36,895 nt of DNA, from sequence record NC_010153.1. One strand, written 5' to 3'. This document shows, in pieces, positions 6,199 through 36,895 of the stretch. The position numbers were made by a program, and so were the translations under genes. Each line of letters starts with the position of its first letter. Positions within the stretch are counted from its first letter, which is position 1. The notes beneath the pieces were generated by a model, which saw only the letters and a list, made by a program, of their open reading frames with translations, was not told the origin of the DNA and ran no database searches.

Positions 6199-6528
6199 TT
6201 ATTGAATTTCGAATAACCAAAGTTCATATCCTATTTTTTCCAGTTCTTCTGTCGTTTTAATTACGACACCTTCTGGTAACCTTTGCTTTAAAGAAAATGC
6301 TATAATTTTGTCTCCGTGCGTTGCTCTGATGGCTATTCGGTTTACTGGGACATTAACTCCTAAGACGTTTGTAAGCAATTCTGCTGTTGCTTGGTGACCT
6401 ATAGCGGACGTGAAGTTCTCTTTTTTCACTAATTCTCTTGCTTCTTCAATGCTTATCTGTCTTGCCTTTACGGTATACTCCTCCCCTGGTTTTAGGGGGA
6501 GGATTTGGGCATTTAAAATGTATAGCAT
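6199..6528 (-). CDS. acrIII-1: AcrIII-1 family viral ring nuclease (DUF1874, AFV3-109-like), 109 aa
   Basis: MLYILN start, SAIGH45QATA catalytic GH motif, VNR and QRLPEG motifs typical of the family. Confidence 0.9.
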   Translation of the reverse strand: MLYILNAQILPLKPGEEYTVKARQISIEEARELVKKENFTSAIGHQATAELLTNVLGVNVPVNRIAIRATHGDKIIAFSLKQRLPEGVVIKTTEELEKIGYELWLFEIQ

Positions 6529-7445: not shown

Positions 7446-7931
7446 TTAAGCTTCAGAAAGTTTTATGATTCCAAACCCTTTGTTCTTTTTTGCCCCTATT
7501 TTCAATAAAATCGGTAGTTTTATTTCTTGATTAAATATCAGTGTGGTGTTAGTCTTTGATCCTGCAATCAAATATTCATAGTTTGTCAGTGAATTGACAA
7601 CTTTCCTTGTTCCTATTCTCACATAATCTTTGGGGAATGTTATTATTCCTGAAACCACTGCATTTTGATATTGTGGGTATTGTGTTCTTAATGCTCCAGT
7701 TATAGTAAATGATGGTATGATGATGTTGCATAATGCGTCTCTGTCAAAGGCACGGTCTACATGGTCAATAAGTTCATGAAATTCTTCAGGGTAGCACTTC
7801 TTTAGATCTTGCAATTGTAATTTTTTCATCGCTTTGTTGGGACTCAGCGAAGGTGCAATCACTGGCGTTAATATTTCGATTATAATATTTTTCGTAAAGT
7901 TGTTGTTTTGTTTATTGTTAGTTTGTGCCAT
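7446..7931 (-). CDS. Minimal RAMP-superfamily (Cas7/Csm3-like) protein, 161 aa
   Basis: Three RAMP hallmarks in order: beta1 IIIEILTPV; VD59RAFDRD...IIPSFTITGALR (cf. Csm3 D..vrd...IPGSSLKGxxR); C-terminal G-rich loop IG146AKKNKG152FG154IIKL. Confidence 0.82.
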   Translation of the reverse strand: MAQTNNKQNNNFTKNIIIEILTPVIAPSLSPNKAMKKLQLQDLKKCYPEEFHELIDHVDRAFDRDALCNIIIPSFTITGALRTQYPQYQNAVVSGIITFPKDYVRIGTRKVVNSLTNYEYLIAGSKTNTTLIFNQEIKLPILLKIGAKKNKGFGIIKLSEA

Positions 7932-7968: not shown

Positions 7969-8012
7969 CGAGTGGTTTTCGAAAACTTTATAAGATTCTG
8001 AGTGTATATTTT

Positions 8013-8111
8013 GTTGCCCGAAAGAAGATGAGGGCGTGAGAGTTGCGATTTATGTCATCGTTGCTATTCCTCTTGACGTGAACCCCGGCGTTGTGGGGCG
8101 ATATGTCTTTT
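8013..8111 (+). ncRNA. Putative small RNA 1 (8 hexamers, 8036-8083)
   Basis: TGCCC/GGGCG 5' stem; T at 8037, 8043, 8049, 8055, 8061, 8067, 8073, 8079; CCCC/GGGG 3' stem; T-run 8108-8111. Ends are inferred. Confidence 0.72.
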
Positions 8112-8147
8112 ATCCGAAAGTTTTATAAGATTCTAAGCGCATATCTT

Positions 8148-8252
8148 ATCGCCCGATAAATGATGAGGGCGTGAGAGTTAAGGTGTATGTTATCGTTATT
8201 TTGACCGTTCACATGACCATGAACCCCGGCGTTGTGGGGCGATAATTCTTTT
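8148..8252 (+). ncRNA. Putative small RNA 2 (9 hexamers, 8171-8224)
   Basis: CGCCC/GGGCG stem; T every 6 nt from 8172 to 8220; 3' stem; T-rich end. Ends are inferred. Confidence 0.75.
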
Positions 8253-8291
8253 CTTTAACGAAAGTTTTATAAGATTCTAAGCGCATATCTT

Positions 8292-8385
8292 ATCGCCCGA
8301 TAAATGATGAGGGCGTTGTGATTTGTGTTGTTATTACGATACACGTTCTCATGAGCCCCACTTCCGTGGGGCGATATGTCTTTTT
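8292..8385 (+). ncRNA. Putative small RNA 3 (7 hexamers, 8315-8356)
   Basis: Same 5' stem; T every 6 nt from 8316 to 8352; perfect GCCCCAC-ttcc-GTGGGGC hairpin; T5 at 8381-8385. Confidence 0.75.
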
Positions 8386-8423
8386 CATGACGAAAATTTT
8401 ATAATATTCAAAGTTAAAGTGTT

Positions 8424-8520
8424 ATCGCCCGATAATAGATGAGGGCGTTGCGATTCGTTTTGCTTTTGTGGTACACGTTTTCATGAACCCCACGGGGGTG
8501 GGGCGATAATTCTTGTTTAT
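8424..8520 (+). ncRNA. Putative small RNA 4 (7 hexamers, 8447-8488)
   Basis: Same 5' stem; T every 6 nt from 8448 to 8484; CCCCAC-gggg-GTGGGG hairpin; T-rich tail; no in-frame start codon near the putative 5' end. Confidence 0.75.
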
Positions 8521-8659
8521 TCCCTTTTTTTCTCACTTTGCAAATATTTTTACTATTCTGGACTTTGAAAAATATTGAAAGATAGAAGAAAGAATAAAGT
8601 AGAAAAAATATCCAAAAAGTGAAAAAAATGAAGTATAAAAAATAAAATAGGGAAAAAAA

Positions 8660-9013
8660 TCATTTGACTTGAATCCATCCTTTGTTACTTTTGAATACGT
8701 AGAAATATGTGTCTTTCCATTCTTCGTGATCCGAGTCTTCAGTTACTTTTATTACAACTTCTCTTGTTTTTGGAATTATGGCAACGTCTCTTACTAACGT
8801 TTTTCCGTAATTCTCTTCTTTCTCTTTCAATGTTATTGCGATAACGTCTCCGTATAGTATACTGTATTTCCTAACGAACCAGTCGAAATTACTAGTGTCG
8901 TCTATTGTCTCTATTTCCAGAATAAAGTTTCTCTCCGGCTCATTTTTTTCTGCTTTTTGAATTAATTCTTTTAGTTCTTCTTCGCTTATTTCATTATTTA
9001 GTTCCTGTTGCAT
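8660..9013 (-). CDS. Acidic hypothetical protein, 117 aa (anti-defence candidate by context)
   Basis: ORF track; promoter/SD cassette identical to that of the 223-aa gene. Confidence 0.85.
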   Translation of the reverse strand: MQQELNNEISEEELKELIQKAEKNEPERNFILEIETIDDTSNFDWFVRKYSILYGDVIAITLKEKEENYGKTLVRDVAIIPKTREVVIKVTEDSDHEEWKDTYFYVFKSNKGWIQVK

Positions 9014-36479: not shown

Positions 36480-36895
36480 AATACAAAAGGTAGAACAAAA
36501 AATAAGATAGAGAGAGCAAATGATATAGGGCACGACGACACGAGATACAGACTGAGCAAACGAGAGCAAATGACGAGGAACGAAAGACGAGAAACGAGAG
36601 ACAAAGAAAGGGAAACAATGACATAGGGTACTACGAACGAAAATACGACAAACGATAAACAAAAGAACGGGAAATGAGAACGAGAAACAATGACATAGAG
36701 TACTAACGAACGAGACGTGAAGAACGAGAAAATGAGAGACGAGGAACGAAGAAGGAAACGATGACGTAGGATACTAACGAACGAGAAACAAGAAACGAGG
36801 AAATGAGAAACTAGAAACTAGATACTAAATACGAGATACATGACACGAAGATACGAGATACTAGATACGAGATACTAAGGAACTAGATACTAGAC
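36480..36895. repeat. Right subterminal low-complexity region with ~72-nt degenerate tandem repeats
   Basis: (A/G)ATGACRTAG.(G/A)TACTA.CGAACGA at 36617, 36689, 36760 (looser copy at 36519); many ACGAGA words; CTAGATAC at 36818, 36861, 36883. Confidence 0.8.

Follow-up and report, generated by a model that had tools for sequence, protein, structure and literature searches.

Acidianus filamentous virus 7 (AFV7; AM087122; Betalipothrixvirus pezzuloense), with which the 36,895-bp window analysed here (NC_010153.1) is identical in sequence, contains a 728-bp unannotated gap between two open reading frames (ORFs), ORF161 and ORF117, that is filled by four tandem units of ~132–144 bp each. The core of every unit carries a T at each sixth base, and the question that this locus raises is what such a periodicity is for: whether it is a matter of chance, of codons or of RNA and, if of RNA, which protein would read it. 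Comparison with related viral and metagenomic loci shows the invariant T at every sixth base to be genuine and unrelated to codon structure, and to mark four predicted small non-coding RNAs.

A six-base periodicity in the AFV7 units

The periodicity was described in an initial annotation made from the window alone, and its coordinates, core lengths (48, 54, 42 and 42 nt) and counts are exact on re-check. T occupies the second position in 31/31 hexamers of the four AFV7 cores; 27/31 have a purine at position 1, and 28/31 have T or G at position 3. Taken singly, a period-6 T run is only modestly unusual, because the genome is T-rich (32.5% T; its + strand has 27 runs in which T recurs with period 6 at least 7 times) and shuffled cores reproduce such phases: when each core is shuffled separately, a phase consisting of T throughout arises in 130, 15, 1400 and 2282 of 200,000 trials for units 1 to 4, respectively. 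We also agree with the caution, already made in that annotation, that the units are homologous and that the 31 positions are not independent. Since the units are not independent and single runs are unremarkable, the case is made with relatives.

The periodicity and its register in related loci

Each predicted AFV7 RNA opens with a 5' hairpin that has a stem of 5 bp and a conserved loop of 12 nt (GA-N5-7-RAUGA), continues with a tract of 7–9 hexamers, which would be single-stranded in this architecture, and closes with a CCCC-N8-GGGG 3' hairpin and then a U tract. Five close homologs of ORF161 are found on short metagenomic contigs, each with 1–3 units of the same type divergently upstream, and AFV7 together with four metagenomic relatives provides a set of 14 units. 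The core is 42, 48, 54 or 60 nt long in all 14 of these AFV7-clade units, always a multiple of six, and the T is kept in 119/119 hexamers. The flanking positions are more permissive (position 1, G63/A32/C13/T15; position 3, T63/G32/A19/C9), and pairwise differences between orthologous cores amount to 0.49, 0, 0.32, 0.28, 0.32 and 0.14 at positions 1 to 6, respectively. When units are compared, the cores are seen to turn over faster than the handles. The 1.3-kb contig L046/L054 (JAPNUP010000006.1), on which homologs of ORF161 and of ORF117 occur together with one RNA unit, is binned as a Bacillota metagenome-assembled genome from a Solfatara sample and is almost certainly a mis-binned fragment of an archaeal virus.

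A full hidden Markov model search extends the comparison to 19 clusters of ORF161-like proteins of 160–215 amino acids. Distant homologs with arrays directly beside the gene, at 29–37% identity, are P0009, P0010, P0011, P0012, P0013 and orf18 of Los Azufres archaeal virus 2 (LAAV2, KF547927); the loci at which gene and array adjoin are L052, L053, L055, L056-59, L060-63 and LAAV2. The two are linked in every lineage with enough flanking DNA except P0007.

The 5' hairpin with its GA-N5-7-RAUGA loop is common to all arrays, in LAAV2 as the variant CCGGA-N4-5-RUGAAGG. Its stem covaries at all five pairs, the pair types being CG/AU/GC, CG/UG/GC, CG/GC, GC/AU/UA and UG/CG/UA/AU, and in L056 the two strands are fully swapped (GGGG...CCCC) with the loop retained. 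A 3' hairpin is present in the AFV7 and L056 clades, and the units of L055 and LAAV2 abut without a separate 3' element.

The register follows a simple rule: counted from GAUGA, a pyrimidine occupies positions 6, 12, 18 and so on, and the earliest of these positions is at the foot of the stem. Among independent lineages, a pyrimidine at every sixth base in this hairpin-set register is found in 23/24 units and in 8/8 LAAV2 units, and the period is 6 in all 32 in-phase units, with one pyrimidine fixed and no GG. Consecutive pyrimidine steps number 10, 11, 9 and 8 in the AFV7 units, 8–12 at the AFV7-like loci L042–L045, 5 in L046, 15 in L052, 14 in L053 (ten C, then four U), 21, 31 and 7 in L055 (mixed C/U), 9, 10 and 8 in L056, and 7–11 in LAAV2 when counted from the hairpin (6–10 by another count; 88% C). 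Runs in the remaining five phases are 0–5 steps long, never above 5, and shuffles with the phase fixed attain the observed run between 0 and 620 times per unit in 20,000 trials. Because the periodic base is C at 10/10 steps in L053, a mixture of C and U in L055 and mostly C in LAAV2, the constraint acts on RNA chemistry and not on codons.

These relatives also narrow what is constant. The initial annotation had proposed RUK as a constant element alternating with freely varying NNN triplets, but only the pyrimidine is general: within the AFV7 clade, the purine at position 1 and the T or G at position 3 are found in ~77% of hexamers, the other clades show them weakly or not at all, and the triplets do not vary freely, position 6 being the second most conserved. 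Around the periodic pyrimidine, the +1 base leans toward U, the −1 base toward a purine in the AFV7 clade only, and the −2 base is relatively conserved.

Some of the arrays have further features of their own. In LAAV2 (L064, 7487-8040), eight units abut without promoters in the manner of a repeat-spacer array, and the deposited orf19 overlaps the first unit; in L055 (746-1255), a called ORF of 169 amino acids spans three units. Both are probably spurious genes that overlie RNA arrays, and the long open frame over the L055 array is largely explained because NYN codons are never stops. In L060 (876-960), the loop GAUCCAAG is complementary over 8 bp to CUUGGGUC just 3' of the hairpin, with a +1 register shift right after it, a pairing that is possibly a pseudoknot variant of the handle. 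The L060 contig also carries a gene with a weak match to a Cas12f/TnpB-type domain.

Evidence against a coding role for the units

The peptide model that the initial annotation had offered as an alternative is rejected on the comparative data. According to this model, the units encode small hydrophobic peptides, for example VRVAIYVIVAIPLDVNPGVVGR, in which the T is the second position of alternating Val/Ile/Leu/Met/Phe codons that specify an amphipathic β-strand. In frame, the AFV7-clade units do have NTN as every second codon, 13/14 of them lack a stop within the core, and a TAA or TAG comes right after GGG-CGA in most of them. The first core codon, however, is GTG, GTT, GTA, TTA or ATT, with no conserved start, nor is there an in-frame start as far back as the TATA box; L044 unit 1, L053 (codon 8) and L056 unit 1 contain in-frame stops, and the periodicity continues past them; and 4/14 units read through into the TATA box of the next unit. 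Position 6, which would be a wobble position, is the second most conserved (0.14), the opposite of a wobble pattern, and the C or mixed C/U of the relatives would alternate hydrophobic residues with Ser, Pro, Thr or Ala. Covariation of the 5' hairpin, up to the full strand swap, would moreover rewrite any encoded residues. As read from the sequence, then, the units do not have the start codon, the open frame and the third-position variation of a translated small ORF or leader peptide, and we regard a coding role as extremely improbable. Ideas of a tmRNA-like element or an attenuator leader, considered because the frame is open but lacks a start, were dropped given the C for U and the in-frame stops in relatives.

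Organisation of the RNA units

Every unit has the same order of elements, TTTATAA, then UAUCGCCC-GAUAAAUGAUGA-GGGCG, the variable core, CCCC-N8-GGGG-CGAUA and a T tract (Table 1). In each of them the conserved RNA module has its 5' end ~24 nt downstream of the TTTATAA box. TATA boxes of the Sulfolobales occupy a known position relative to the transcript 5' end, and the position of the box here, together with the T tract, would fit an archaeal promoter and terminator. Positions 7975-8530 are thus predicted to hold four independently promoted non-coding RNA genes, with RNAs of ~95–105 nt. Rfam searches with the units, at the gathering threshold and at E up to 10, returned nothing relevant; BLASTN of the region against phages and plasmids matched AFV7 records alone; and exact hairpin-pattern scans of IMG/VR returned AFV7 and chance matches.

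Table 1. Predicted RNA units, promoter elements and flanking genes of the AFV7 locus (positions in the window).
Feature	Position	Strand	Description
RNA unit 1, ~100 nt	8011-8110	+	5' hairpin 8015-8036; core 8036-8083 (48 nt, 8 hexamers); 3' hairpin 8083-8098; CGAUA; T tract
RNA unit 2	8146-8252	+	5' hairpin 8150-8171; core 8171-8224 (54 nt, 9 hexamers); 3' hairpin 8224-8239; CGAUA; T tract
RNA unit 3	8290-8384	+	5' hairpin 8294-8315; core 8315-8356 (42 nt, 7 hexamers); 3' hairpin 8356-8371; CGAUA; T tract
RNA unit 4	8422-8520	+	5' hairpin 8426-8447; core 8447-8488 (42 nt, 7 hexamers); 3' hairpin 8488-8503; CGAUA; T tract
TATA boxes (TTTATAA), units 1-4	7987-7993, 8122-8128, 8266-8272, 8398-8404	+	putative promoter elements
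ORF161 (AFV7 gp13)	7446-7931	-	predicted minimal single-domain RAMP (Cas7/Csm3/Vipr kind); proposed to bind the RNAs as their partner
ORF117	8660-9013	-	candidate accessory gene of the module; homologs adjoin ORF161 homologs elsewhere

ORF161 and the Vipr proteins

The Viral Interference Programmable Repeat (VIPR) system, first described in 2026 in two bioRxiv preprints, consists of a viral RAMP of ~20 kDa and of vrRNAs of ~100 nt that are made up of 9–16 YNNGG pentamers (10.64898/2026.04.26.720920, 10.64898/2026.04.26.720927). The vrRNAs, ~100 nt in length, are encoded in arrays beside the gene (10.64898/2026.04.26.720920). All of the reported repeats are pentamers (YNNGG, NNNGG, YNNNG, NNNNG, GAC/NN and so on), and the NN bases pair with double-stranded DNA, skipping one target base, the targets being competing phages (10.64898/2026.04.26.720920, 10.64898/2026.04.26.720927). 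There is one Vipr protomer per repeat, with the Y of GGY held in a purine-excluding pocket (10.64898/2026.04.26.720927), and the Vipr family was gathered by its authors by PSI-BLAST from X1U2U4 (10.64898/2026.04.26.720920, 10.64898/2026.04.26.720927). The main texts of the two preprints do not mention Acidianus, Sulfolobus or a 6-nt form.

ORF161 gave nothing in single-sequence and profile searches against the PDB, and its matches in Pfam (RAMPs and Cas6_C, sub-threshold) and PADLOC (type III RAMPs only) are weak. Its AlphaFold model (predicted local distance difference test score, pLDDT, 87.7) has as top Foldseek matches in the PDB the type VII Cas7, Csm3 and Cmr4 (E 1e-3 to 1e-2, probability ~1, TMq 0.5-0.57). 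As modelled, ORF161 is a minimal RAMP with a single RNA recognition motif (RRM), a G-loop, a thumb and a helical bundle; the C-terminal G-rich loop reads GAKKNKGFG.

The link to Vipr comes from searches of BFVD, in which the best matches of ORF161 outside its own family are three phage RAMPs. The VIPR locus of SUSP1 was found at KT454805 27.5-29.5 kb through its YNNGG runs, and a search with the model of a Vipr 99% identical to that of SUSP1 (pLDDT 92.3) returns the same three phage proteins first, followed by AFV7 ORF161 (E 7.6e-4) and LAAV2 orf18 (E 2e-3); the reverse match, from ORF161 toward SUSP1-type Vipr, has an E of ~1e-2. The ORF161 and SUSP1-type models share the order β1, two-helix insert, helix, β-hairpin, G-loop and β, and the ORF161 model has no long helix before the G-loop.

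Residues H57, D59, F62, R64, E119, G152 and G154 are invariant in 22 family members, which are 23–84% identical to ORF161, and the HxDRxFxR motif after the helical insert (residues 57-64) could be an RNA-contact or catalytic site. Scans with patterns from the ORF161 alignment returned AFV7 only in IMG/VR, nothing in JGI metagenomes and one mis-binned viral contig in GTDB. The family occurs in viral and metagenomic DNA only, 185,579 cellular species genomes having yielded just that kind of match, a single mis-binned viral fragment.

The suggestion in the initial annotation that the constant element is bound by protein therefore holds in one respect and needs correction in another: the periodic element is most readily understood as that constant part of a non-coding RNA to which a protein binds, because the adjacent ORF161 is a minimal RAMP, of a kind that binds RNA in short fixed steps, and because gene and periodic RNA travel together, but the element is one pyrimidine and not RUK.

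Comparison with VIPR, class 1 CRISPR and box C/D RNAs

The resemblance to VIPR is extensive. Both are viral loci of one or two genes flanked by non-coding RNA genes, with one small RAMP that is not part of a CRISPR locus, and both may have a small accessory gene, which would be ORF117 in the AFV7 module. The predicted AFV7 RNAs are likewise ~100 nt long and encoded singly or in arrays right beside the RAMP gene, and RNAs of this type are runs of at least 7 short periods, each with a fixed pyrimidine in alternation with variable bases, and have one end that is structured and conserved. ORF161 has, in the same order as Vipr, a predicted two-helix insert after β1, a thumb-like hairpin and a G-loop. 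In contrast to VIPR, the period is 6 nt instead of 5, with one base per unit fixed and without GG; the conserved module that would set the register is a 5' hairpin, where VIPR has a 3' tail or pseudoknot; and ORF161, at 161 amino acids against ~190 for Vipr, has no detectable sequence homology to the SUSP1-clade Vipr.

In the class 1 CRISPR effectors, the Cas7 backbone advances 6 nt per protomer, and every sixth base of the CRISPR RNA (crRNA) is displaced by a thumb. The AFV7-type RNAs share this 6-nt period and ORF161 has its best solved-structure matches in Cas7, Csm3 and Cmr4; the units of LAAV2 and L055 also abut like repeat-spacer arrays, with a conserved hairpin of ~20 nt and a variable tract of 36–186 nt. 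The AFV7 module differs in that it lacks a host-type CRISPR repeat and that each unit has its own predicted promoter and terminator, in that the putatively displaced base is restricted to a pyrimidine, a constraint that acquired spacers do not have, and in that ORF161 is a bare single RRM of 161 amino acids. No cas1 or cas2 is seen near the module and no other recognisable cas gene is found among the six neighbouring ORFs tested; with respect to these ORFs the module is not a CRISPR array with adaptation genes and a multi-subunit effector.

Archaeal box C/D small RNAs (sRNAs), which are kink-turn (K-turn) RNAs bound by L7Ae, are small, are abundant in the Sulfolobales and have guide tracts between conserved boxes. 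The AFV7 units resemble them in the RUGAUGA motif near the 5' end and in having variable tracts between conserved parts, but they lack box D, C' and D', the GAUGA lies inside a hairpin loop, and the hexamer periodicity has no counterpart. A box C/D and K-turn/K-loop interpretation of the GA...GAUGA loop was rejected, as the geometry does not fit, there is no CUGA next to the terminal stem and Rfam returned no match. The AFV7 module is most likely VIPR-like with the hexamer register of Cas7, which would be new beside the pentamer-only VIPR systems.

A proposed mechanism and its alternatives

On the evidence of the ORF161 model and of the comparisons above, we consider it probable that ORF161 and the periodic RNAs form a ribonucleoprotein of the Vipr/Cas7 kind. 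In this model, in which we infer the binding stoichiometry, the pyrimidine pocket and any targeting, ORF161 would polymerise along the tract with one protomer per six nucleotides, in a register set by the 5' hairpin. Each protomer would hold one uridine, or a pyrimidine in the wider family, in a purine-excluding pocket, much as Vipr holds the Y of GGY and as the thumbs of Cas7 displace each sixth base of the crRNA. The five remaining bases of a step would be left variable and would most likely serve as a hard-wired guide, directed at a nucleic-acid target that belongs to a competing virus or to the host. Pairing could then run over five contiguous bases in each step, in the class 1 CRISPR manner, or be confined to a gapped and shorter block like that of VIPR. 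A more specific version, possible but in our view rather doubtful, is that of a hexamer-register relative of VIPR that reads its target in the class 1 CRISPR style, each protomer having five bases paired and one pyrimidine displaced, with guides hard-wired in the genome and a 5' hairpin as its repeat-like handle, and that would be a living intermediate between pentamer VIPR filaments and the Cas7-crRNA backbone in viruses of the Sulfolobales.

Several observations weigh against an ORF161-bound guide RNA. ORF161 resembles Cas7 and Vipr to a modest degree in structure (TM 0.4-0.57, E ~1e-3), and an hhalign comparison of the ORF161 family (22 sequences) with the SUSP1-clade Vipr family (20), the one Vipr clade covered, detected no homology (probability 0.15%, E 0.38); RAMPs share little sequence. 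P0007 (L047-L049) has no recognisable unit within 2.4 kb, and the L060 unit holds the register for two steps and then resumes with a +1 shift. The folded state is also not settled, because a terminal stem competes with the local hairpins in units 2–4: UUAUCGCCC on the 5' side and GGGCGAUAA on the 3' side are able to form a terminal stem of 9 bp (8146-8154 with 8236-8244; also in units 3 and 4), which excludes both local hairpins and is preferred in the minimum-free-energy fold of units 2–4. Unit 1 retains this pairing through G-U pairs, it is not conserved in L046, and the stem could serve as a processing signal or be a conformer of a closed or storage type.

Nor has a target been found. The gapped and 5-of-6 search that the initial annotation had suggested was carried out with 24 pairing rules (block and skip) for 14 guides and with hexamer-shuffled controls, both guide sets being run against 266 kb of viral DNA from seven co-occurring Acidianus viruses (AFV7 with its array masked, AFV3, AFV6, AFV8, ARV1, ATV and ABV), host genomes and plasmids lying outside the search, and it gave no excess over shuffled guides. 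BLASTN against GenBank phages and two exact IMG/VR scans also yielded no target. This outcome does not refute a guide role, because the search covered viruses and not host genomes.

The main rival to a guide role is that of a decoy or anti-CRISPR, whereby the RNA-ORF161 particle guides nothing and instead mimics the Cas7-crRNA backbone of host type I/III systems, soaking up Cas5, Cas10, Cas11 or Cas7. The best solved-structure matches of ORF161, which are backbone subunits of type III and type VII effectors, would suit such a role, as would the restriction of its family to viral and metagenomic DNA and its absence from the 185,579 cellular species genomes, the lack of a target and the variable genome slot in which the cassette sits. 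A decoy needs neither several diverged cores per virus nor cores that turn over faster than handles, however, and the nearest characterised analogue, VIPR, is a guide system. The 8-nt tag of Sulfolobales crRNAs is AUUGAAAG, and the AFV7 RNAs, on a reading of their sequence, carry neither a Sulfolobales CRISPR repeat nor this handle. We therefore judge a decoy to be unlikely.

It is also conceivable, though we think very improbable, that the periodic RNAs are bound by another factor, such as host L7Ae at the GA...GAUGA loop or host Cas7, and that the adjacency of ORF161 is irrelevant to the periodicity. The loop does contain a RUGAUGA-like box C motif, with potential for tandem G-A/A-G pairs next to the stem, but Rfam gives no C/D-box or other family, and the hairpin, again as read from its sequence, has no box D and no 3-nt bulge geometry. 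Gene and array moreover co-occur down to 29% protein identity and in differing gene orders, and this co-occurrence across lineages is hard to explain without a functional link. A guide RNA assembled with ORF161 remains the account that we prefer.

Neighbouring genes and other features of the genome

In the sister viruses AFV3, AFV6 and AFV8, ORF85/86 and ORF162 occupy the slot that is held in AFV7 by the periodic-RNA cassette, and since these viruses carry other genes there, the region is a swappable cassette. Homologs of ORF117 are located next to ORF161 homologs in L043 (987-1319, 53% identity), L046 (884-1228, 43%) and L056 (9388-9711, 22%, E 1e-6), and the gene order around them differs among the three. 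ORF117 has no informative family match; judging by the conserved adjacency, it is likely to be an accessory gene of the ORF161/RNA module, comparable to the vap genes of VIPR. Other partner candidates beside distant homologs, among them a protein of 249 amino acids in L051, were set aside, having no family match and no similarity to AFV7 ORF223.

Elsewhere in the window, ORF109 (6199-6528, − strand), described in the record only as conserved hypothetical, is a clear STIV B116-like protein (Pfam E 9e-31). Short tandem repeats with periods of 7, 14, 22 and 50 nt are found at the right genome end (36572-36894), and a 22-nt repeat near the left end (186-232); these are presumably terminal repeat structures of the linear AFV7 genome.

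Implications

VIPR has been put forward as a code of pentamers and, possibly, as ancestral to the CRISPR RAMPs (10.64898/2026.04.26.720920, 10.64898/2026.04.26.720927). If the reading proposed here is true, there would be a second, six-nucleotide register, which is the step of every Cas7 backbone, in an even smaller protein, and a further rule of RNA-protein recognition, that of one fixed pyrimidine per six bases. A function would also be assigned to an unannotated gap of ~730 bp and to two "hypothetical" genes of a cultured archaeal virus, in a type of array on which gene callers have placed ORFs elsewhere (L055 and LAAV2 orf19). The viruses of the Sulfolobales, some relatives among them having repeat-spacer-like arrays, would then offer a concrete and testable intermediate for the proposed transition from VIPR to CRISPR.

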